Source: Obrimoposthia wandeli (lineage: Eukaryota). Taken from it: a stretch of DNA of 64,000 nucleotides. Shown here one piece after another: positions 9,453-20,990 of this stretch. Position 1 is the first letter of the stretch. Each line of letters opens with the position of its first letter. The stretch is taken from positions 1 through 64,000 of the forward strand of contig CDROCS010005637.1 in NCBI GenBank assembly GCA_977020255.1, in the 5' to 3' direction. The notes beneath the pieces were generated by a model. The model was not told the origin of the DNA, did no database searches, and saw only the letters and a program-made list of their open reading frames with translations. Made by a program: the position numbers and the translations under genes.

Positions 9453-9548
9453 CTTAACAAGCGGTTAAAATGGGACAGAAAACACTTGGCTTTTGCTCCT
9501 TCGTCGCTAATTTTAGCCAACAAATTTTGCCTCTTAACGAGCTTTGGT
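9453..9548 (+). mobile_element. Degenerate integron attC site
   Basis: TAAC-AAGCG-GTTAA..GGGACAGAAAA..TTGGCT..AGCCAA..TTTTGCC..TTAAC-GAGC-TTTG. Nested inverted repeats of a marine-type attC with the R' GTTA box mutated. An upstream frame stops at TAA inside the R'' box. Confidence 0.65.
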
Positions 9549-12082: not shown

Positions 12083-12678
12083 TGGGTAGCTAGCATCTCC
12101 CAACAATGTAGATCTCACTTAGACATAACATCCTCTGTAATCCCTGCAAGTATTAGCCATGTACATCATCATGTGTTTTATTCCTAACTAATTCTTCTTG
12201 TCATAAATTCTGTTCAATTTCGTTACTTTCAATATTTAGCCGTAAATTATCATCAAGTTAACGGTGGTTTTATTTATTTCTCGTTCGTTCAGATTTACTT
12301 AACTCTAGGTTAACTTCATTCTAATATTCTTAACTTACAGTGAGGGGTATACTCTCGGCTCTTAGAAAGAGAGAGCCAAATATGTTTGAATTCGTTACTA
12401 ATTCCTCATTAAAAAACACACCTATTAATTATTAATAATGGCTTATCAATAATTGCTATCACTACCGGCTTATTGTGTCTTACGCCGCGGCTTCTCTAAT
12501 GACAATGCTGTGCGCTCTAAGGCTGATCATATCAGTCCAGGGTCAAAGGCGGACAATCGTATAGATAGCTATACTCGTAGCATGATGGTGCAAGCTGCAG
12601 CTTAATTTAAACACCTGCCTAGGTATTTGACCATTAAAACAAACATCACATTAACCGATGTAAACAGGGAACATACCC

Positions 12679-14076
12679 ATGTATGAAAATGAAGAAAAAC
12701 TAACGAAAGCATTTGTTATTGCCGCCATCATTTGGGGCGTTATAGGCATGTGCATGGGTTTAATGGCAGCTCTGCAGCTATATCTACCACAATTGAATTT
12801 TGCCAATGAGTATATAAATTTCGGGAAAATAAGACCCTTGCATACTAACGCCATTATCTTTGGGTTGGTTTGCAACTTTATAATCGGTCTGTCGTTATAC
12901 ATAGTGGCAAAAACATCAGTCGTGAATCTAGTATCCAAAGGTTTATCGTGGTTCTTGTTTTGGGGTTGGCAGATAACATTGGTAATCGGCCTTATCTCAA
13001 TCGCTTTAGGGTATACATCAACCAAAGAATACGCCGAATTTGAGTGGCCAATTGATATCGCTATTGTGGTTCTTTGGTTAACGTTTGGATATATCTTCTT
13101 TGGAACGCTAGCGAAAAGAAAAACAAAGCATATATTTGTTTCAAACTGGTTCAGCGGTGGTGTCATTATTGTTATCGGCTTAATTTATTTGATAAACAAT
13201 TTAGCCATTCCCGTGTATGCATTTAAAGGCTACTCCATATTTTCTGGTGCGAGTGATGCACTTGTACAGTGGTGGTGGGGGCATAATGCAGTTGGCTTCT
13301 TATTGACAGCTGGTTTTGTGGGTACCAACTACTATTTCATTCCCAAGTTAGTTAATAGACCCATTTATTCATATCGACTGTCTTTAATTACTTTTTGGGG
13401 CTTAATCGGCTTTTATACTTGGGCTGGTACACACCATTTACTCTTTACATCCGTTCCATCTTGGATTCAAAATATTGGCGTTGTTATGTCTATTCTATTA
13501 TGGATCCCGTCATGGGCTGGCGCATTTAATGCTTGGATGACGTGTACTTCCAATAAAGAAGAATTGAAAACAAACCCCGTTGTCTGGTTTTTCTTATCGT
13601 CAATCGCCTATTACGCATTAGCAACGTTTGAAGGGCCTCTTATGGCTATCAGATGGTTCAATATGATAGCTCACAATACCAGTTGGGTTATAGGACACGT
13701 TCACTCTGGCGCGCTAGGTTGGGTTGGCATGACGTGTATAGCAACCTTCTACTATTTCATTCCTAAGTTATACAAAAAAGAACTCTACTCATATGGCTTA
13801 GTTAAGGTGCATTTTGTACTCGCTCACATAGGCGTACTGTTCTACATAGTCTCCCTTTGGATCGGTGGTATAGGGCAAGGTGTTAAATCGTTAAGCCTCA
13901 CTGAGTCTGGTTCTCTTACTTATTCGTTTGTTGATATTTTACGATTTATGGAACCCTATATGCTCGGACGTGCAATTGGCGGGGCGCTGTTTATCTTGGG
14001 TATGTTAGTGATGGTATATAACCTCATCATGACGGTGAAAAAACCACAAAAAGTAGTTATTGAAGGAGCATATTAA
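12679..14076 (+). CDS. ccoN: cbb3-type cytochrome c oxidase subunit I
   Basis: RPLHTNA, WWWGHNAVGF, FYTWAGTHHL, TFEGP and IGHVHSGALGW. All six metal His ligands and the cross-link Tyr are present. Confidence 0.95.
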   Translation: MYENEEKLTKAFVIAAIIWGVIGMCMGLMAALQLYLPQLNFANEYINFGKIRPLHTNAIIFGLVCNFIIGLSLYIVAKTSVVNLVSKGLSWFLFWGWQITLVIGLISIALGYTSTKEYAEFEWPIDIAIVVLWLTFGYIFFGTLAKRKTKHIFVSNWFSGGVIIVIGLIYLINNLAIPVYAFKGYSIFSGASDALVQWWWGHNAVGFLLTAGFVGTNYYFIPKLVNRPIYSYRLSLITFWGLIGFYTWAGTHHLLFTSVPSWIQNIGVVMSILLWIPSWAGAFNAWMTCTSNKEELKTNPVVWFFLSSIAYYALATFEGPLMAIRWFNMIAHNTSWVIGHVHSGALGWVGMTCIATFYYFIPKLYKKELYSYGLVKVHFVLAHIGVLFYIVSLWIGGIGQGVKSLSLTESGSLTYSFVDILRFMEPYMLGRAIGGALFILGMLVMVYNLIMTVKKPQKVVIEGAY

Positions 14077-14693
14077 TGGAAGAGTCAATATCCAAGTCAG
14101 TAATGGCTTTTATCACTATCACGACTGTCGTGGTCTTATTTTCATTCTTTGTGTGGGTTTTCCCCGGGTTCTTCTTCACCAACGATCTTAAAGAAATAAC
14201 GACAGCTAAACCATACACAGCTTTAGAGTTAGCTGGACGGGATGTTTATATGGCTGAAGGTTGCGTGGCATGCCATACCCAGATGGTTAGAAACTTGGAA
14301 CCGGAAAGAAAAAGATACGGTCGTCCTAATAAAATGGAAGATGATGTTTATGAGTTTAACTTTTTGTGGAGCTCACAAAGAACTGGCCCTGATTTAACTA
14401 ATATTGGTTTGAAGTACACAGAAGGCTGGCACAAACAGCATCTAATCAATCCTCAGGCAATTGTACCAGCCTCAATCATGCCGCAATATCCGTGGCTGTT
14501 TGAAAAGCAACTTAACGTTAGTCATGTTATTGCTTCAATGAAAGCGATGAAGAAGCTAGGTGTTCCGTATACAGACACGCAAATTGAAAATTCATCAAGC
14601 AAAGTGGAAGGTAAAACAAAAGGTGATGCGCTTGTTGCTTACTTGATGAGTCTTGGCGTAGATACGCGTGAAAAAGGTGGGGATTTAAATTAA
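14076..14693 (+). CDS. ccoO: cbb3-type cytochrome c oxidase subunit II
   Basis: GRDVYMAEGCVACHTQMVR, WSSQRTGPDL and SIMPQYPWL. TAATG overlap with ccoN. Confidence 0.95.
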   Translation: MEESISKSVMAFITITTVVVLFSFFVWVFPGFFFTNDLKEITTAKPYTALELAGRDVYMAEGCVACHTQMVRNLEPERKRYGRPNKMEDDVYEFNFLWSSQRTGPDLTNIGLKYTEGWHKQHLINPQAIVPASIMPQYPWLFEKQLNVSHVIASMKAMKKLGVPYTDTQIENSSSKVEGKTKGDALVAYLMSLGVDTREKGGDLN

Positions 14694-16159
14694 TGGAATC
14701 CATGAACATATTATCAAGCGTACTATCGATTATCTTCTTTTTTATCATGGTTGCAGTTATTTATTCACAGTTCCGAAAGAACAAAACTGCAGACAGTAAT
14801 AAAACAATAGAGCAATTTGATGGGATAGATGAAAAAGATGCACCAATTCCTAAGGTTTTCTTTGTTGCGTATCTTATTGCATTTATAGGGGCAATTGTTT
14901 ATGTCCTTCTATATCCAAGTTTAGCTTCTTGGAAAGGGTTTATCGGTTGGACCGAGAATGATGACGCGTATGTGGCTAAATCAATTGATATAAACAATAA
15001 CATTAACGCCATAATCAACGCGAATACCGATGAACAAGTCTTTACTCTGTTACAAAAAGATCCGCTTGTTTTACAGAGTGGTAAATCGCTATTTGGTGAT
15101 AATTGTTCTGCTTGTCATGGTCAAGATGCTAAGGGGCAATATAACTACCCGAGTTTAGTTGATAAAGACTGGTTATACGGCGGCTCACCTCAAGATGTCT
15201 ATACGACCATACATAATGGACGTAAGGGTAAAATGCCAGCTTTGAAAGGTGTACTGAGCGGTAAAGACATAGATGAGCTTGCCCAGTATGTGTCTGATTT
15301 AAATAAAGGACCATTTAAAAGCAATGCGCTTTTCGATGCTAATTGTTCATCATGTCACGGTAAAGATGCTCAAGGTTCACATGGCGTCGGTGCACCTAAC
15401 TTAACGGATGATATCTGGCTTCATGGTTCAGCTAACGCTGATATCAAACGTAATATTGAGAATGGCATGAGTAATGAAATGCCTGATTTTGGTGAGCGAC
15501 TTAGCAGAAATCAAATATTGTCTTTAACCTCTTATATTGTGTCACTACAGAGTGAACCACAAGACAATATCGATTTTATGCAAGCGAACACTTATATCTT
15601 CTCTCGAAATGAACAGCAATTGCCAGCAGTGTTAACGACTTGTGTGGCCTGTCATGGCGCAGATGGTCTTGGTGCTTTACCTGGAGCGCCTAAGTTAGCA
15701 GGATTAAAGCAAGCGTATATCTATAACCAATTGAACTTGTTTGTATCTGGTTTAAGAAAAAATGCAACGATGCAAAATATAGTTGCCGGCTTAGATGTGA
15801 AAGATAAGTTACTTGCTGCTAGCTATTTCAGCTCTCTCGATTCACCTGCGATAAGTAAAATCACTCCAGAGAAATCAGCAGACGGTCTCATTAAAGATCC
15901 TACTGAGCGCCTGATATTCCAAGGTGATTGGCAACGCGCTATTCCTGCTTGTTCTACTTGTCACGGTCAAGAAACGGAAGGTAGTCCATCATTTCCAAGA
16001 TTGGCAGGTCAATCATCGGACTATTTAGAGAAGCAATTATTTGACTGGAGAACAGGCGATAGAACCGGTGATCAAGGTCATATGATGCAAAACGTCGTTA
16101 ACAAGCTAACAGATGATGAAATTAAATCCCTGTCGAAATATTTATCAAAAATGAAATAA
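14693..16159 (+). CDS. ccoP: cbb3 oxidase subunit III (CcoP) fused to a diheme cytochrome c4; four CxxCH motifs
   Basis: FDGIDEKDAPIP, then CSACH, CSSCH, GAPNLTDDIW and MPDF. An extra ~190 aa follows with CVACH (PKLAGL..YIYNQL) and CSTCH (FPRLAGQ..YLEKQL, HMM). TAATG overlap with ccoO. Confidence 0.9.
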   Translation: MESMNILSSVLSIIFFFIMVAVIYSQFRKNKTADSNKTIEQFDGIDEKDAPIPKVFFVAYLIAFIGAIVYVLLYPSLASWKGFIGWTENDDAYVAKSIDINNNINAIINANTDEQVFTLLQKDPLVLQSGKSLFGDNCSACHGQDAKGQYNYPSLVDKDWLYGGSPQDVYTTIHNGRKGKMPALKGVLSGKDIDELAQYVSDLNKGPFKSNALFDANCSSCHGKDAQGSHGVGAPNLTDDIWLHGSANADIKRNIENGMSNEMPDFGERLSRNQILSLTSYIVSLQSEPQDNIDFMQANTYIFSRNEQQLPAVLTTCVACHGADGLGALPGAPKLAGLKQAYIYNQLNLFVSGLRKNATMQNIVAGLDVKDKLLAASYFSSLDSPAISKITPEKSADGLIKDPTERLIFQGDWQRAIPACSTCHGQETEGSPSFPRLAGQSSDYLEKQLFDWRTGDRTGDQGHMMQNVVNKLTDDEIKSLSKYLSKMK

Positions 16160-16174
16160 CCTGTGAGCGAATGA

Positions 16175-16233
16175 AAGGCTAATAGATTGAAGGTTAACAG
16201 CTCAAAGGTTAATAGATTGAAAGATTAATAGGA
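16175..16233 (+). repeat. About four imperfect 15-bp tandem repeats (AAGGTTAATAGATTG)
   Basis: Units start at 16175, 16190, 16205 and ~16221; the last runs into the sorA RBS. Confidence 0.6.
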
Positions 16234-16243
16234 TACCGTAATT

Positions 16244-17497
16244 ATGAAAATGAATAAGTTAAGAAGGGAAATCATTAAAGCTGGTGGCTATGTCGCTTTA
16301 GCTGCTGCACCATTAACGGCTTTCTCTAAAGAGTTTATGAAAGACGGGCAAATGTATTCGGATGGTGAAGGGGTTAGCTATGCAGATGGCCCTAAGCCTG
16401 TATTAAGCAATTTTCCGCAAAAAGATAATGTTGTGATCGTACATACTCGACCACCTCATCTTGAAACGCCTTTTAATGTATTTAATGAAGGACTAATAAC
16501 ACCGAATAACCGTTTCTTTGTTCGTTATCATTTAGCTGACGTCCCTGTAGCCATAGACACTGATAAGTACACTATTACTATTTCAGGGGCTGTTGATGAG
16601 GAAATTACATTAAGTTTGGCTGAATTAAAGTCGATTGAAGGCCAACAAGAAATTGTAGCGGTACAACAGTGTACTGGTAATAGTCGAGGTTATTCATCAC
16701 CACGTGTTTTTGGTGCGCAATTAAGTAATGGTGCAATGGGTAATGCGAAGTTCAAAGGTGTGCCACTTAAAAACGTGTTAGCGAAAGCGGGTATTTCTAG
16801 TGCTGCGACAAGTGTCATCATTGATGGTTTAGATAAGCCGGTACGAGATACGACTCCAGATTTTCAAAAATCATTACCTATTGACCATATTATGACGGGC
16901 GAACCTATGCTTGTTTGGGAAATGAATGGTGAACCTTTACCATTTTTAAATGGCTTTCCTGTGAAATTAATCGTTCCGGGTTGGTATGCAACATATTGGG
17001 TTAAACATGTATCGCACCTTAAAGTCATAGAGGACAAGTTTGATAACTTTGATGCGTTCTTTATGACAACTGCATACCGTCTACCTGATAACGACTCAAA
17101 GAGTGAATTACCAACTGCCAGAGCGAAAAAGACGTTACCTGTAAATCGTTTCCCAATAAGAAGTTTTGTTACTAGCTTAGAAAATGGTGATGAAGTTAAC
17201 GCTGCTACCAGTATTGAAATTAAAGGGATAGCTTTTGATAGTGGTAGTGGTATCAAAAAAGTTGAAGTTTCAGTCGATGGTGGGAATAAGTGGATGCAAG
17301 CAGCGCTTGGTGAAAATCTTGGTCGCTTTTCCTTTCGAGGTTGGAAGTTAAGTCATAGCTTCAATGAAAAAGGCAGAACGCTTGTGATGGTAAGAGCAAC
17401 AGGTAAAAGTGGTGAGACACAGCCTGTTAATGCATCTTGGAATCATGGCGGTTATAACCGAAATGCGATTGAACGAACAAGTATTAAGGTGGTTTAA
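16244..17497 (+). CDS. sorA: Sulfite dehydrogenase molybdopterin subunit (SorA type), Tat-exported
   Basis: RREIIK twin-Arg leader, RPPHLETP, FFVRYH (substrate Arg/His), QCTGNSR Moco Cys, PGWYATYWVK and GIAFDSG dimer domain. Confidence 0.88.
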   Translation: MKMNKLRREIIKAGGYVALAAAPLTAFSKEFMKDGQMYSDGEGVSYADGPKPVLSNFPQKDNVVIVHTRPPHLETPFNVFNEGLITPNNRFFVRYHLADVPVAIDTDKYTITISGAVDEEITLSLAELKSIEGQQEIVAVQQCTGNSRGYSSPRVFGAQLSNGAMGNAKFKGVPLKNVLAKAGISSAATSVIIDGLDKPVRDTTPDFQKSLPIDHIMTGEPMLVWEMNGEPLPFLNGFPVKLIVPGWYATYWVKHVSHLKVIEDKFDNFDAFFMTTAYRLPDNDSKSELPTARAKKTLPVNRFPIRSFVTSLENGDEVNAATSIEIKGIAFDSGSGIKKVEVSVDGGNKWMQAALGENLGRFSFRGWKLSHSFNEKGRTLVMVRATGKSGETQPVNASWNHGGYNRNAIERTSIKVV

Positions 17498-18100
17498 ATG
17501 CGGTTTTTACTTATTATATTAGTGCTATGTTCATTGACTGTTAAAGCTGAGATCGTATCAATAACCTTACCTATGGATAATACCAAGCTTAAGCCGTCGA
17601 CATTACCTGGATATGGTCTTGCGCAATCTAAATGTCACCTTTGTCATTCAGTCGATTACGTTATGTATCAACCACCAGAGATGGATTTAAAAGAGTGGAC
17701 TGGTGAGATGTATAAAATGCGTAATGCCTATGGTGCACCTATCAGTATGGGGGAGGCTAAGGTTATAGCGGCTTATTTGTCAGTTGCTTATGGCTCGGCA
17801 AAAGAAACTGATGCAGAAATAATTGCCTTAACTAAACTCGCTAGCACCAAAACAATATATCAGCCGGATAACTTAGATGTGAAATCACTATTATCTGATA
17901 ATGATTGTTTAACGTGTCATAAAGATGTGGGCGACTCTTCTATTAAAGACATACGAGCTAAATATGAAGGAACGGATAATGCGGTTGATAGATTAGGAGT
18001 AGCTATTAAGTCAGGAGGTCTTGGCATGCCTAAACCACCTATCAATCGCCATGAATCAGAGGCGATTGCAAAATACATCCTAGGGGAAAGTACGAAATAA
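17498..18100 (+). CDS. sorB: SorB-like cytochrome c with a second c-type domain (diheme)
   Basis: Signal peptide, CHLCHSVDYVMYQPP..W..KM..AYGAP (SorB domain), then CLTCH..GMP. Confidence 0.8.
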   Translation: MRFLLIILVLCSLTVKAEIVSITLPMDNTKLKPSTLPGYGLAQSKCHLCHSVDYVMYQPPEMDLKEWTGEMYKMRNAYGAPISMGEAKVIAAYLSVAYGSAKETDAEIIALTKLASTKTIYQPDNLDVKSLLSDNDCLTCHKDVGDSSIKDIRAKYEGTDNAVDRLGVAIKSGGLGMPKPPINRHESEAIAKYILGESTK

Positions 18101-18136
18101 GGACCAAGGTACAATTTATCGACTAGATATAAAATC

Positions 18137-18160
18137 AAACCGTTGTTATAGCGGTTTTTT
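18137..18160 (+). terminator. Intrinsic terminator closing the cco-sor operon
   Basis: AAACCGTT-gttat-AGCGGTTT followed by a T run. Confidence 0.65.
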
Positions 18161-18401
18161 CACATCTGAAGGCATCTTCACTAGGGCGCGTGCAGACAAC
18201 ATAGCGATCAATGTTGATCTGGACGGTGAGTTGCATGAAAATTATGTATTTACTCTCACTAACACATAACAAATAAGTTCAATCAGAATGACATTGCTTT
18301 CTAGCAGAATAATGAGTCAGAAATAACGATGGAAATGACTTTTCTCAATTTCATTCACCAATATCAGTAGTAAGATAATAACCCTCATTAAACAAATTAA
18401 A

Positions 18402-18989
18402 GTGGTTACCATGACAATCGATCTAAATAGTCGTTACGGCTTAAATCCTGCGCATAGTGAAGTAGTAGAAGCGTGTAACGTTATTGAGCCGTGCGATACA
18501 TTAGATATGGGCTGTTCAAATGGGCGTAATGCCTTGTATCTCGGCCAACTCGGATTTAACGTCAATGCCATCGATATAAATGCCGGTGCTATTGATACGC
18601 TGCAAAGTATTATTGATCAAGAAAAGATCACTAACATTAAGACTCAGGTGCTCGACATTAACAGTGCCAACCTTGGTGCAGACGATGTTAACCACTATGG
18701 TTTTATCTCATGTACCGTAACCCTCATGTTTATTAACCCTGCCAATGTTGACGCTATCATTGCTGATATGCATAAGCGTACTCTGCCCGGCGGTTATAAC
18801 CTGATTGTTTGCGCTATGAGCACGGAACAAAATCCATGCCCAGTGCCGTTTCCTTTTACCCTACAAACGGAACAGTTGCGTGAAGCTTATGCAGGGTGGG
18901 AGTTGATTAAGTACAATGAAGATGTCGGTACTATGCACAATGGCGCGAAATTGCAGTTTGCGACTATGTTGGCACGTAAACCAGCCTAA
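18402..18989 (+). CDS. tehB: Tellurite resistance SAM methyltransferase TehB
   Basis: HSEVVEA, LDMGCSNGRNALYL, GGYNLIVCAM and FATMLARK. Confidence 0.9.
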   Translation: MVTMTIDLNSRYGLNPAHSEVVEACNVIEPCDTLDMGCSNGRNALYLGQLGFNVNAIDINAGAIDTLQSIIDQEKITNIKTQVLDINSANLGADDVNHYGFISCTVTLMFINPANVDAIIADMHKRTLPGGYNLIVCAMSTEQNPCPVPFPFTLQTEQLREAYAGWELIKYNEDVGTMHNGAKLQFATMLARKPA

Positions 18990-19002
18990 AACTGTCTAAA
19001 AC

Positions 19003-19030
19003 AAAAAGACCTCAACATTGAGGTCTTTTT
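19003..19030. terminator. Bidirectional intrinsic terminator between tehB and ppkA
   Basis: AAAAAGACCTCAA-ca-TTGAGGTCTTTTT, a perfect inverted repeat between convergent genes. Confidence 0.85.
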
Positions 19031-19040
19031 ATTCCCAGCT

Positions 19041-20990
19041 TTAAACTGAATCTGCTTGGCCTTTATCTGCTTGGCCTTTATCTGCTTTGGTAAACAAACT
19101 CTCTGCTTTTTTGATCACTCTTGAATCTGACTTAATTTTGCCTATCACGATCAGTTTCAAGTAACGATTGGCTAAATCTCGACGCAGTTTAATTAATGGC
19201 TTGAAGTTCACGGGTAAATACTGGCTGTATTTATCCTGTTGAATATAAATACGATCCAGTGATTTTTGGCTTTTAGCACTCTTGATTGCACCTATCCAAT
19301 AATCAAATTGATCTTGATAAAATGTTTCCGCCGCATTGAAAGGAAACTCTTCGGTTTGGTCTGATGCTTTATAGTCTGTAAGTGCTTCAATCGCAGATAT
19401 TAACGTGGGTTGTGTTAACAAGTCTTGCAGCGCAGGTACTGAATCTTTAAACAACAATTCACCAGGTGCAAGTAGGGTGTTAATTTGCAGATAATCATAA
19501 TTTCGTATCGCAGTTTTTAACAGCTTAGTGTATAAGCTGATGGCTTGTTCTGACGGGATGATTTTGTAATCGGCATCAACTTGTTTAATATCCTGTTGCA
19601 GGGTAAAGATGTCAGTGCCATCGCTGTCAGGAATATAATTTGCACGTAATAAACGTTGCTCAATATTCGCGACAAGTATCGATCTCGCTGATTCTCTTTG
19701 ACTATCAACATAATGTCCGATGTCAGCAAGTTTAACAGAGTCGGGGTACAACTTAGTTGTTTCTGCTATTAACGCTGACATGTGGTAGAAATCTGGATAA
19801 CGCGATGTCGGATCCTGCATAATACGATTTATTTTCGCAATATGGTAATCGATCACCTCATCACGTTTTTGTCGCAACACACCGGCTTTGACTGTTAACG
19901 TTTCAGCATCTAATTCCGTTAATGAATTCATGAACACTTCAACGCTTGAATCAACTAACCCCTCGACACTCGTTATCTGCGCTTGCTGCGTGACTTGCTG
20001 CTTGTTAATTACATTTTCCATATAATAAAAATAACCAACAGAACCCAGCACGGTCAATAAGGGTAACGCCGTTGAAAAAATAGGAAACGGCTTACGGGTT
20101 AGTTTATGTTGCCATGCTTGGATACTCAGTGGACGTTCTTCATTGGTGAGCGCCAGTGCCGAACGCAGCATTTTCCAATTTCGATTACTGAGTTTAGACA
20201 ATTTTTTAGCGGTAATTTTATCGGTGATAGCTTGATCGGCAGGCTTACGCAGATACGGGTGTTTACTTGAAATCAATTCATAAAATATACAACCGAGAGA
20301 AAACAAATCATCGCTTTCTGAAGGCTGTTTACCTTGTAACAACTCGGCACTGGCATAAGCCGGTGTATAACCACTTAATGCGTTGTTATGTTCAATGTTG
20401 TCACTGGCAAATTCATCGGCATGATTTTGAAGTACGCGCGCGACCCCAAAGTCAAAAATCTTAATATCACCGTTACGGGTATGCATGATATTGGCTGGTT
20501 TCAAATCTGTATGCACAATCCCATTTTTGTGGGCAAACTTCAGTGCGTCAGCCACTTGATAAATAATTTTTTCTGCGCCTTTATAAGTCAGGCCTTTTGG
20601 TTTTGATCGTGAAATGACTTGGTCAAGGGTTTCACCATTTATCCATTCCATCGTAATAAAGCATAATTTATCTTCTTTATCGACGTCGTAAACACGAATA
20701 ATATTGGGATGAGAGAGGGCCATTGTTTTATGCGCTTCTCTAAACAGTAACTGCTGCGCTTCTTTGTTCTTAGTATATTGTGGTTGTAGGACTTTGATGG
20801 CGACGTAAGGATCATCAACTCCGGCTTTACTTAACAGCAAGTCTTTTGCTTTATATATATCACTCATACCACCAGAACCAATATGGGCTTCTAACTCATA
20901 ACGGTCTTTTAATATTCGGCCTGTAAGCGTAGCTGTATCAACTTCGTCTTTTGAACTATTGCTCTCTAATAGCGTTTTATTTTGTACCAC
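19041..20990 (-). CDS. ppkA: T6SS membrane Ser/Thr kinase PpkA
   Basis: GSGGMS, VAIK, HTDLKPANI, DFG and GYTPAYAS motifs, one TM helix and a periplasmic domain. Divergent from tagH. Confidence 0.85.
   Translation of the reverse strand: MVQNKTLLESNSSKDEVDTATLTGRILKDRYELEAHIGSGGMSDIYKAKDLLLSKAGVDDPYVAIKVLQPQYTKNKEAQQLLFREAHKTMALSHPNIIRVYDVDKEDKLCFITMEWINGETLDQVISRSKPKGLTYKGAEKIIYQVADALKFAHKNGIVHTDLKPANIMHTRNGDIKIFDFGVARVLQNHADEFASDNIEHNNALSGYTPAYASAELLQGKQPSESDDLFSLGCIFYELISSKHPYLRKPADQAITDKITAKKLSKLSNRNWKMLRSALALTNEERPLSIQAWQHKLTRKPFPIFSTALPLLTVLGSVGYFYYMENVINKQQVTQQAQITSVEGLVDSSVEVFMNSLTELDAETLTVKAGVLRQKRDEVIDYHIAKINRIMQDPTSRYPDFYHMSALIAETTKLYPDSVKLADIGHYVDSQRESARSILVANIEQRLLRANYIPDSDGTDIFTLQQDIKQVDADYKIIPSEQAISLYTKLLKTAIRNYDYLQINTLLAPGELLFKDSVPALQDLLTQPTLISAIEALTDYKASDQTEEFPFNAAETFYQDQFDYWIGAIKSAKSQKSLDRIYIQQDKYSQYLPVNFKPLIKLRRDLANRYLKLIVIGKIKSDSRVIKKAESLFTKADKGQADKGQADSV
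19051..19087. repeat. 15-bp tandem repeat x2.5 (ADKGQ at the PpkA C-terminus)
   Basis: TCTGCTTGGCCTTTA at 19051 and 19066, partial at 19081. Confidence 0.8.

Follow-up and report, generated by a model that had tools for sequence, protein, structure and literature searches.

Gene Organization of the ccoNOP-sorAB Locus

Genes for a cbb3-type oxidase and for a sulfite dehydrogenase stand side by side in the window (the whole stretch of 64,000 nucleotides that was analyzed), which raises the question of whether they encode one respiratory chain from sulfite to O2 or two enzymes that only share a neighborhood. Five genes, ccoN-ccoO-ccoP-sorA-sorB, lie on the forward strand with open reading frames at the coordinates of Table 1, and profile matches and matches to sequences of solved structures upheld the identities that an initial annotation had assigned to them. 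Read directly, the ccoN/ccoO and ccoO/ccoP overlaps are TAATG and the sorA/sorB junction is TAAATG, so that both the oxidase and the sorAB junctions are translationally coupled. The ccoP-sorA spacer is exactly 84 bp, and one copy of its 30-bp repeat is absent in Shewanella UCD-KL12. A pattern scan of this gap found no terminator-like site, and its sole promoter-like match ends within the sorA start codon; the predicted fold of the gap is no more stable than that of shuffled sequence (z = +0.5). The terminator at 18137 was absent from the pattern-scan list and was recognized by folding, while DNA homology to the Shewanella cassettes stops at 18074. The coupling, the terminator-free gap, the abutting sorB and the closing terminator thus all stood as first described. 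In the leader, folding revealed a stable hairpin at 12357-12377 (-17 kcal/mol, z = -2.2); no Rfam match to 12262-12678 was obtained, and no conserved FNR-type box was found in this region.

Table 1. Features of the ccoNOP-sorAB cassette, in window coordinates.
Feature	Position	Strand	Evidence and remarks
Leader/promoter region, conserved, non-coding	12262..12678	+	DNA homology with Shewanella cassettes begins at 12262
ccoN, cbb3-type oxidase catalytic subunit, 465 aa	12679..14076	+	COX1 8e-96; TIGR00780 550 bits
ccoO, monohaem subunit, 205 aa	14076..14693	+	FixO 4e-63; one CXXCH at residue 63
ccoP core (residues 1-290), membrane anchor and two canonical haem c domains	14693..15562	+	TIGR00782; CXXCH at 138 and 218
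Dihaem cytochrome c4/TsdB-like module, C-terminal (CcoP residues 314-485)	15632..16147	+	c4 and TsdB matches
ccoP-sorA spacer	16160..16243	+	30-bp tandem duplication (16174-16191, 16204-16221); sorA ribosome-binding site
sorA, molybdopterin sulfite dehydrogenase catalytic subunit, 417 aa	16244..17497	+	NCBIfam SorA 551 bits; Oxidored_molyb and Mo-co_dimer
sorB, dihaem cytochrome c subunit, 200 aa	17498..18100	+	NCBIfam SorB 90.5 bits; CXXCH at 46 and 137
Intrinsic terminator closing the unit	18137..18161	+	9-bp hairpin 18137-18157, then U tract

The locus departs from the canonical ccoNOQP-ccoGHIS layout, in which ccoQ lies between ccoO and ccoP and ccoGHIS is adjacent. As the initial annotation had reported, the window holds no ccoQ, for which the overlap of ccoO and ccoP leaves no room (the ccoO-ccoP gap is 64-254 bp in the roughly 80 canonical loci sampled), and no ccoGHIS-like ORFs or domains were detected among the scanned neighboring ORFs. 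The oxidase may, as that annotation proposed, draw on assembly factors encoded elsewhere.

Marine metatranscriptome libraries contained contigs with 85-99% identity to ccoO, ccoP, sorA and sorB, although RNA libraries can contain DNA; none of these contigs bridged 16160-16243, though both sides were covered. The cassette (12262-18161, 5.9 kb) is most likely one operon, because the gap has no terminator or usable promoter, the genes are coupled, and the corresponding gap in Vibrio is only 18-32 bp (Vibrio sp. TBV020 and V. mediterranei; 32 bp in V. aquimaris).

A Divergent cbb3 Oxidase with a Cytochrome c4 Module Fused to CcoP

CcoN matched the P. stutzeri CcoN structure (3MK7_A, E = 1e-154), and alignment to P. 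stutzeri/9G6B revealed the ligand set of a cbb3-type (C-family) haem-copper oxidase: the haem b ligands H55 and H342, the haem b3 ligand H340, the CuB ligands H202, H252 and H253, the cross-link tyrosine Y246 and the Ca-site residue E117 are all kept. Beside ccoN are encoded the monohaem CcoO and the membrane-anchored dihaem CcoP portion that characterize cbb3 oxidases. The TIGR00780 score of CcoN is below the equivalog cut-off (583 bits), as would be expected of a divergent, long-branched subclade. In the tree, CcoN of the window indeed falls in a separate long-branch clade (support 100/100), within which the SorAB-linked members are monophyletic (support 100/99); ccoQ is missing throughout this clade, and CcoP is extended in all of its members. 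The oxidase is most likely a specialized, ccoQ-less alternative isoform and not the housekeeping cbb3, in agreement with the secondary isoform suggested at the outset.

Of the 217 positions with at least 95% conservation across sampled canonical CcoN, 58 are changed in this clade, including two conserved histidines (window residues 170 and 238), so proton pumping or O2 affinity may differ from those of canonical cbb3. These changes on a long branch would also suit an oxidase that does not primarily conserve energy, such as an O2 scavenger, a weak or non-pumping variant, or an enzyme whose NO reductase side activity guards an O2- or NO-sensitive periplasm; we regard this as highly improbable, since the redox-centre ligands and the cross-linked tyrosine are intact and the full-length ORFs are conserved across seven genomic contexts.

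CcoP (488 aa, ORF 14693-16159) has four CXXCH motifs and four haems. Its core scored 219 bits to TIGR00782 over residues 32-286 (cut-off 180), with further cytochrome c domains beyond, and over residues 19-291 it can be aligned with the CcoP structure of P. stutzeri (3MK7_C residues 17-307, E = 7e-40). A linker of about 25 residues joins the core to the C-terminal module, which aligned to residues 11-178 of P. aeruginosa cytochrome c4 (6Q2U, E = 5e-22), was also alignable to 1ETP, and matched the TsdB half of TsdBA equally well (5LO9 residues 18-187, E = 4e-21). It consists of two tandem class I domains with CXXCH at 317 and 420 and distal methionines (Met360 and Met464/465) that are invariant across the family, and the alignment to c4 is full-length. 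These matches support the fusion of a c4 to CcoP that had been proposed at the outset.

SorA and SorB of the Cassette

SorA has the Moco-binding and dimerization domains (PF00174 and PF03404), and its residues C143 (the Mo ligand), R94, H96, R148 and Y278 correspond to C104, R55, H57, R109 and Y236 of S. novella SorA (2BLF_A, E = 6e-122), so that the molybdenum-ligand cysteine and the Arg/His/Arg/Tyr pocket are complete. A twin-arginine motif at residues 7-8 followed by a hydrophobic region predicts Tat export, and the haem c subunit SorB is encoded directly downstream, as is typical of the SorAB family. SorB carries a Sec-type signal peptide, a SorB domain at residues 22-98 (2BLF_B, E = 1e-15) and a second, c551/c552-like domain at residues 128-197 (E = 1e-5 to 2e-5 to c552/c551 structures); the two CXXCH motifs and two cytochrome domains bear out the earlier description of SorB as dihaem. 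Relatives of SorA outside the cassette also come with a dihaem SorB, and SorAB is thus evidently able to use other acceptors.

It is very unlikely that the molybdoenzyme has a substrate different from sulfite, such as a further oxyanion of sulfur or selenium, which would give a different donor-to-O2 chain. Such a substrate would be in keeping with scores just short of the NCBIfam equivalog cut-offs (551 against 600 bits for SorA, 90.5 against 93 for SorB) and with the separate subgroup formed by cassette SorA (at least 74% identity within it, 53-61% to most other SorA, with one relative at 69%), but it accords poorly with the strong match to the crystallized S. novella enzyme, the retention of all five active-site residues, and the many proteins named SorA at 53-58% identity. 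Among relatives with readable upstream context, those with at least 74% identity lie in the cassette and those with 57-61% lie outside it; the contig of the 69% relative begins just upstream of sorA, which leaves its context unreadable.

Recurrence of the Cassette and a Sister Cassette with tsdA

A synteny search for ccoNOP beside sorAB, suggested in the initial annotation, revealed the identical five-gene order in seven genomic contexts: the Moritella-like marine bacterium of the window, Shewanella psychropiezotolerans, Shewanella sp. UCD-KL12, Vibrio sp. TBV020, V. mediterranei, V. aquimaris and one further run. The flanks differ in every one of them, and IS elements adjoin the cassette in two. 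No sulfite-producing or sulfite-exporting genes adjoin any copy. All five genes diverge in step between the window and Vibrio (identity of 74-75% for CcoN, 76-78% for CcoO, 74-75% for SorA, 57% for CcoP and 59-63% for SorB). The same order in differing surroundings, together with deep divergence, argues that the ccoNOP-sorAB linkage is selected beyond chance and that the unit moves by horizontal transfer; judged from these sequences, the five genes have stayed linked and been inherited jointly in three bacterial families.

In the sister cassette, ccoN-O-P(c4)-tsdA, tsdA (thiosulfate dehydrogenase) replaces sorAB and no separate tsdB gene is present. These arrangements bear on a looser association, which we consider rather unlikely: SorAB would detoxify sulfite by feeding electrons into the common pool of periplasmic c-type cytochromes, the cbb3 oxidase with its built-in c4 would be fed mainly by bc1, and the genes would travel together because they are useful under the same condition. 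Since c4 normally bridges bc1 and cbb3 (PMC10556555), the module could indeed serve bc1-to-oxidase transfer; there are SorAB loci outside the cassette that encode the same type of dihaem SorB and lack any oxidase, and related oxidase operons with a 5-haem CcoP stand alone, without a dehydrogenase (V. harveyi group, Shewanella). Against such co-travel, the gene order is strictly kept, with gaps of 18-32 bp, over deep divergence and repeated transfer, tsdA occupies exactly the same slot behind a c4-fused CcoP, and every 4-haem CcoP whose context was read is directly followed by a dehydrogenase gene.

Comparison with Known Systems

The initial annotation knew of no description of a ccoNOP-sorAB operon, and likewise no published account was found in the literature searched. 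All parts come from known families, and chains from sulfite through cytochrome c to an oxidase are already known; what is new is the operon, the CcoN clade and, as read from the gene, the natural fusion of CcoP with c4. The rus operon of Acidithiobacillus ferrooxidans also unites a substrate-specific donor system, a c4-type cytochrome and a terminal oxidase, but its substrate is iron, its oxidase is of aa3 type, it has no fusion and its host is an acidophilic autotroph. In Starkeya novella, electrons from SorAB go to a soluble cytochrome c550 and to an aa3 oxidase whose genes lie elsewhere; in the cassette, an oxidase lies within the same gene unit. S. novella SorAB (PDB 2BLF) resembles that of the cassette in being periplasmic, with a Moco subunit, the same active-site residues and, immediately downstream, the gene for a haem c subunit. 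The crystal contains SorB as a monohaem chain of 81 residues, whereas the cassette SorB adds the c551-like domain.

In Neisseria, electrons reportedly flow outward from a tri-haem CcoP to the nitrite reductase AniA. Like the CcoP of the cassette, this one is extended at its C-terminus by cytochrome c, which connects the oxidase with a periplasmic redox enzyme, but the extension is a single haem domain, not of c4 type, in contrast to the two c4-type domains of the cassette, and there is no co-encoded dehydrogenase (PMC2924362). Campylobacter jejuni, with SorAB donating to cytochrome c (PMC4178425), and Thermus thermophilus, with SOR, dihaem c550, c552 and ba3/caa3 in sequence (PMC3561395), likewise oxidize sulfite in the periplasm and pass electrons through c-type cytochromes to a terminal haem-copper oxidase, and Thermus employs a dihaem carrier with room for both electrons, as in the cassette. 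Both use diffusible cytochromes and a general oxidase encoded elsewhere, whereas the cassette has a dedicated isoform with a fused donor cytochrome.

Cytochrome c4 is a natural cbb3 donor, bound in the solved P. aeruginosa bc1-c4-c5-cbb3 supercomplex (PMC10556555; PDB 8SMR/8SNH). The window CcoP core matches CcoP of this supercomplex (E = 7e-41) and the fused module is homologous to c4 over its full length; there, however, c4 is a separate protein bridging bc1 and cbb3, while in the cassette it is the CcoP C-terminus, beside genes for a periplasmic dehydrogenase. TsdB/c4 has also been proposed as a cbb3 donor (PMC9237845). TsdBA (PDB 5LO9) contains a dihaem module matching that of CcoP, and the sister cassette sets tsdA behind such a CcoP; in TsdA-TsdB and TsdBA the carrier is free or fused to the dehydrogenase, and in the cassette it is fused to the oxidase.

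A Shewanella decolorationis study (PMC7052111) describes an mcc-sorB-sorA-c4 operon, patchily present in 14 of 210 Shewanella genomes, which like the cassette combines gammaproteobacterial sorAB with additional c-type cytochrome genes; its cytochromes are free and monohaem, and it includes no oxidase genes. The study tested thiosulfate, sulfur and sulfide as donors and calls the role of SorAB in Shewanella unknown. The initial statement that sorAB clusters often carry a free c4 holds for this one operon and does not extend to the nearest non-cassette sorAB loci, which have no extra cytochrome gene.

A Proposed Sulfite-to-Oxygen Chain

We consider it probable that this 5.9-kb mobile cassette encodes a complete two-enzyme chain from sulfite to O2 that bypasses the quinone pool and bc1. 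Tat-exported SorA, with its molybdenum cofactor, would oxidize periplasmic sulfite to sulfate, and the two electrons would pass to the SorB-type haem of SorB and on to its second, c551-like haem. By docking of SorB, this haem would deliver them to the dihaem c4 module covalently tethered to CcoP, from which they would reach the two CcoP haems, the CcoO haem, haem b and finally haem b3-CuB of CcoN, the site of O2 reduction. The cell would rid itself of toxic sulfite, such as that formed when organosulfonates or sulfur amino acids are broken down, and some energy might be gained through the oxidase, presumably by proton pumping, also at low O2. Of the dedicated wire that the initial annotation envisaged, the parts and the fusion are borne out, and the conserved linkage and the tsdA replacement in the sister cassette strengthen the case beyond what that annotation had seen; its co-transcription, electron path and energy conservation we infer.

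More tentatively, the cassette may possibly represent an undescribed family of "plug-in" terminal oxidases, in which a ccoQ-less cbb3 with a c4/TsdB-like socket on CcoP accepts interchangeable dehydrogenases (SorAB, TsdA), forming quinone- and bc1-independent chains, maybe as supercomplexes. Such oxidases would have spread horizontally among marine Vibrionaceae, Shewanellaceae and Moritellaceae, giving heterotrophs lithoheterotrophic energy from sulfite or thiosulfate.

For annotators, the label "cbb3 oxidase" in Vibrio, Shewanella and Moritella calls for caution, as it spans at least three distinct isoform types. The divergent CcoN clade, with its many changed conserved residues, is useful for structure-function work, and the CcoP-c4 fusion offers a natural model for studying the docking of c4 on cbb3 and its electron delivery to the oxidase. 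As a rule, terminal oxidases draw on a common cytochrome or quinone pool as shared sinks, and the cassette would instead be a compact, transferable respiratory chain, a candidate route by which common marine heterotrophs may dispose of, and perhaps gain energy from, the sulfite and thiosulfate of organosulfur turnover.

Gene organization and transcription of the cassette

The initial annotation grouped ccoN, ccoO, ccoP, sorA and sorB into a single operon, and the coordinates of all five ORFs agreed exactly with it (see table). Reading of the sequence bore out the translational coupling it had described, with TAATG at the ccoN/ccoO and ccoO/ccoP junctions and TAAATG at sorA/sorB. The 84-bp gap between ccoP and sorA had been thought free of an obvious terminator; a pattern scan revealed no terminator-like site there, and the gap folded no better than shuffled sequence. 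This spacer contains a 30-bp tandem duplication missing from Shewanella sp. UCD-KL12, so selection does not act on the spacer sequence as such. The corresponding gap is 18-32 bp in Vibrio sp. TBV020 and V. mediterranei and 32 bp in V. aquimaris (from ORF coordinates). An internal sorA promoter was considered and rejected, as the sole promoter-like match in the gap runs into the sorA start codon and the spacer is not conserved, consisting partly of the duplication. Co-transcription of ccoNOP and sorAB is the simplest reading of such short, unconserved spacers. Folding also recovered the expected terminator after sorB, which consists of a 9-bp hairpin and a U tract 3' of it. In four marine/aquatic metatranscriptome runs, contigs with 85-99% identity covered ccoO, ccoP, sorA and sorB, for which DNA carry-over is a possible source, and none of the contigs in these runs bridged the ccoP-sorA gap.

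Moritella and Shewanella share a conserved leader of about 420 bp 5' of ccoN that includes a stable hairpin (-17 kcal/mol, z -2.2). The Rfam search of the leader for a Moco or other riboswitch or an sRNA gave zero matches at E up to 1. No FNR/ANR box (TTGAT-N4-ATCAA, at most two mismatches) was conserved 5' of ccoN across eight loci, so canonical FNR control is not supported. The idea that the leader encodes a ccoQ-like protein or another conserved small one was discarded, as the small ORFs there do not agree between Moritella and Shewanella in start, stop or length.

Coordinates of the features discussed (L numbers are comparison loci from other genomes or runs)
Feature	Source	Position	Strand	Remarks
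93-bp stretch	window	9455-9545		just 5' of SelO gene
leader	window	12262-12678
leader hairpin	window	12357-12377
ccoN	window	12679-14076	+	COX1 8e-96; TIGR00780 550 bits, below the 583-bit cut-off
ccoO	window	14076-14693	+	FixO 4e-63
ccoP	window	14693-16159	+	NCBIfam ccoP 219 bits (residues 32-286) and further cytochrome c domains
sorA	window	16244-17497	+	Oxidored_molyb and Mo-co_dimer domains; NCBIfam SorA 551 bits
sorB	window	17498-18100	+	NCBIfam SorB 90.5 bits
terminator	window	18137-18161
tehB	window	18402-18989
bidirectional terminator	window	19000-19033
PpkA-like kinase gene	window	19041-20990	-
type VI secretion cluster	window	within 19041-61698		FHA, TssJ, TssK and others from 21632 on
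cassette copy	S. psychropiezotolerans, L001, L002
cassette copy	Shewanella sp. UCD-KL12, L011
cassette copy	Vibrio sp. TBV020, L003
cassette copy	V. mediterranei isolate 50, L006/L012			IS66 genes immediately 3' of sorB
cassette copy	V. aquimaris THAF100 chromid, L095			IS3-type transposase genes immediately 3' of sorB
cassette copy	Logan run DRR018010, L094	10229-11484 (ccoP ORFs)		ccoP split into two ORFs (161 and 226 aa)
match of 93-bp stretch	Shewanella sp. UCD-KL12, L011	678-770
non-cassette sorAB with transporter gene	Shewanella sp. WE21, L010	4837-7900
sister cassette, ccoN-ccoO-ccoP-tsdA	L004	5986-10538		c4-fused CcoP, 484-485 aa across the sister cassettes
sister cassette	L013
sister cassette	L092	7001-11544
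third cbb3 isoform	L091	6623-11176
third cbb3 isoform	L093	6665-11181
third cbb3 isoform	L014	1764-9142

Host and neighboring genes

The window is a bacterial contig within an animal genome assembly. The closest proteins are from Moritella (88-95% identity for CcoP and 95% for SorA), and the GC content is about 40%. A comparative-genomics paper on Moritella describes cbb3 oxidases as conserved across the genus. Downstream of the cassette lies a lone tehB, which a perfect bidirectional terminator hairpin separates from the gene of a PpkA-like Ser/Thr kinase, and a large type VI secretion cluster occupies much of the region beyond. The yeast sulfite pump belongs to the SLAC1/TehA transporter family, a member of which is encoded directly 5' of the non-cassette sorAB in Shewanella sp. 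WE21; because of this common family, the WE21 transporter is a possible sulfite exporter.

Redox centers of the encoded proteins

Matches to solved structures are decisive for the predicted domain identities. CcoN aligns with the P. stutzeri structure 3MK7_A (E 1e-154) and retains all ligands of the redox centers (His55 and His342 for haem b, His340 for haem b3, and His202, His252 and His253 for CuB), together with the cross-link Tyr246 and the Ca-site Glu117. Residues 19-291 of CcoP align with residues 17-307 of P. stutzeri CcoP. The proposed fusion of a cytochrome c4 to CcoP was confirmed, since residues 314-485 correspond to a full-length dihaem c4 (E 5e-22 to P. aeruginosa c4); this module matches the TsdB half of the TsdBA fusion 5LO9 equally well (4e-21). 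SorA matches S. novella SorA (2BLF_A, E 6e-122), carries a twin-arginine signal and conserves the Mo-ligand Cys and the Arg/His/Arg/Tyr pocket. SorB is dihaem as suggested: residues 22-98 form a SorB domain (E 1e-15 against 2BLF_B), and residues 128-197 form a second domain resembling c551/c552. CXXCH motifs number four in CcoP, two in SorB and one in CcoO.

Conservation and probable mobility of the cassette

Among the matches listed in the genome scan, a synteny search for ccoNOP beside sorAB, the check that had been proposed for the operon, found the identical five-gene order in at least six further loci, with different flanks in each. At the nucleotide level, the window matches the Shewanella copies at 86% from 12262 to 18074, where the homology ends. 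In Shewanella psychropiezotolerans, GC is 38% within the cassette and 43% in the sequence on either side. Because flanks differ, IS elements adjoin and GC contrasts, the cassette appears to be mobile; no convincing terminal inverted repeats delimiting a transposon were found. The five genes have diverged in step between the window and Vibrio (identities of 74-75% for CcoN, 76-78% for CcoO, 57% for CcoP, 74-75% for SorA and 59-63% for SorB). SorA relatives at 57-61% identity are encoded with only a 210-aa sorB, the oxidase being absent nearby. Taken as a whole, the five genes very probably constitute one selected functional unit.

Either a frameshift has turned the ccoP of the Logan run into a pseudogene or its split stems from misassembly. 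A 93-bp stretch of the window is 80% identical to one 4 kb upstream of the UCD-KL12 cassette and may be a small repeat element.

A secondary oxidase isoform

Canonical loci of beta- and gammaproteobacteria, of which about 80 were compared, have 64-254 bp between ccoO and ccoP, enough space for ccoQ, and encode a dihaem CcoP of about 300 residues. The two genes overlap in the window and its relatives, whose CcoP carries four or five haems. A maximum-likelihood tree agreed with the earlier view of a secondary isoform, uniting these CcoN proteins on one long branch (100/100 support), within which the order runs from the SorAB-linked type (100/99) through the tsdA-linked type to the five-haem type. 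Of the 217 CcoN positions with at least 95% conservation among the canonical sequences sampled, 58 are replaced throughout this ccoQ-less clade, including residues 170, 238, 293, 299, 405 and 410 (window numbering). Two conserved histidines are lost among them (H170 to Y/F and H238 to T), and we take residue 238 as a possible counterpart of P. stutzeri His243, a proton-pathway residue; a literature search on the role of this histidine gave no match.

The five-haem type forms a third cbb3 isoform, consisting of a small monohaem cytochrome c gene, ccoN, ccoO and a five-haem CcoP (718-721 aa), with no ccoQ. Occurring widely in the V. harveyi group, Photobacterium (leiognathi/damselae) and Shewanella, it usually stands alone; in V. 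ezurae, a gene for a NapA/Fdh-like Mo-bisPGD enzyme lies directly upstream. No literature on this isoform was found. Another kind of natural CcoP fusion is seen in three database proteins of 516-521 aa from Marinicella and metagenomes (P0011-P0013), which carry a cytochrome c1-type domain (PF02167).

Sister cassettes and the proposed electron path

A cytochrome of 353-357 aa is encoded behind the c4-fused CcoP in Vibrio sp. 10N.286.49.* and in a second V. mediterranei strain. The 357-aa protein, from Vibrio sp. 10N, resembles the thiosulfate dehydrogenase TsdA (E 6e-68 against 5LO9, about 1e-37 against the A. vinosum enzyme), and the 353-aa one, from V. mediterranei, is assumed to be its counterpart because of where it is encoded and because it has cytochrome c domains. 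These sister cassettes lack a separate tsdB gene. An AraC-type regulator is encoded upstream of the one in L004.

TsdA has TsdB as its cognate acceptor. TsdB/c4 has been proposed as a cbb3 donor (PMC9237845), and c4 is an established donor that is bound to cbb3 in a solved supercomplex (PMC10556555). Since tsdA replaces sorAB behind the same c4-fused CcoP without tsdB, and TsdB and c4 are known as acceptor and donor, it is plausible that the fused module provides an integral socket for the dehydrogenase encoded behind it, whatever its type. Of the indirect arguments for the dedicated wire from sulfite to the cbb3 oxidase put forward in the initial annotation, this is the strongest. The main rival is a loose association, with electrons from SorAB entering the general cytochrome pool and the c4 module working for bc1; with tsdA standing in for sorAB at the same position, we regard it as rather unlikely. 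We lean, with some reserve, towards a preferential flow of electrons via the fused c4 module to the oxidase of the cassette.

All component families are already known, and S. novella has a chain from sulfite through cytochrome c to an oxidase. Such chains are also present in C. jejuni (PMC4178425) and T. thermophilus (PMC3561395), Neisseria is a precedent for an extended CcoP (PMC2924362), and a sorAB operon with free cytochromes has been described in Shewanella (PMC7052111). As the first reading had surmised, no description of a ccoNOP-sorAB operon was found in the open-access literature, an absence that is not proof; nor was any found there of a ccoNOP-tsdA operon, a natural CcoP-c4 fusion or the CcoN clade.

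Along the dedicated wire, electrons from sulfite would enter at the Mo center of SorA and pass through haem 1 and then haem 2 of SorB to the c4 module, from there through CcoP to CcoO, and finally via haem b to haem b3-CuB and O2. This path would skip quinones and bc1, so that energy would be conserved at the oxidase only.
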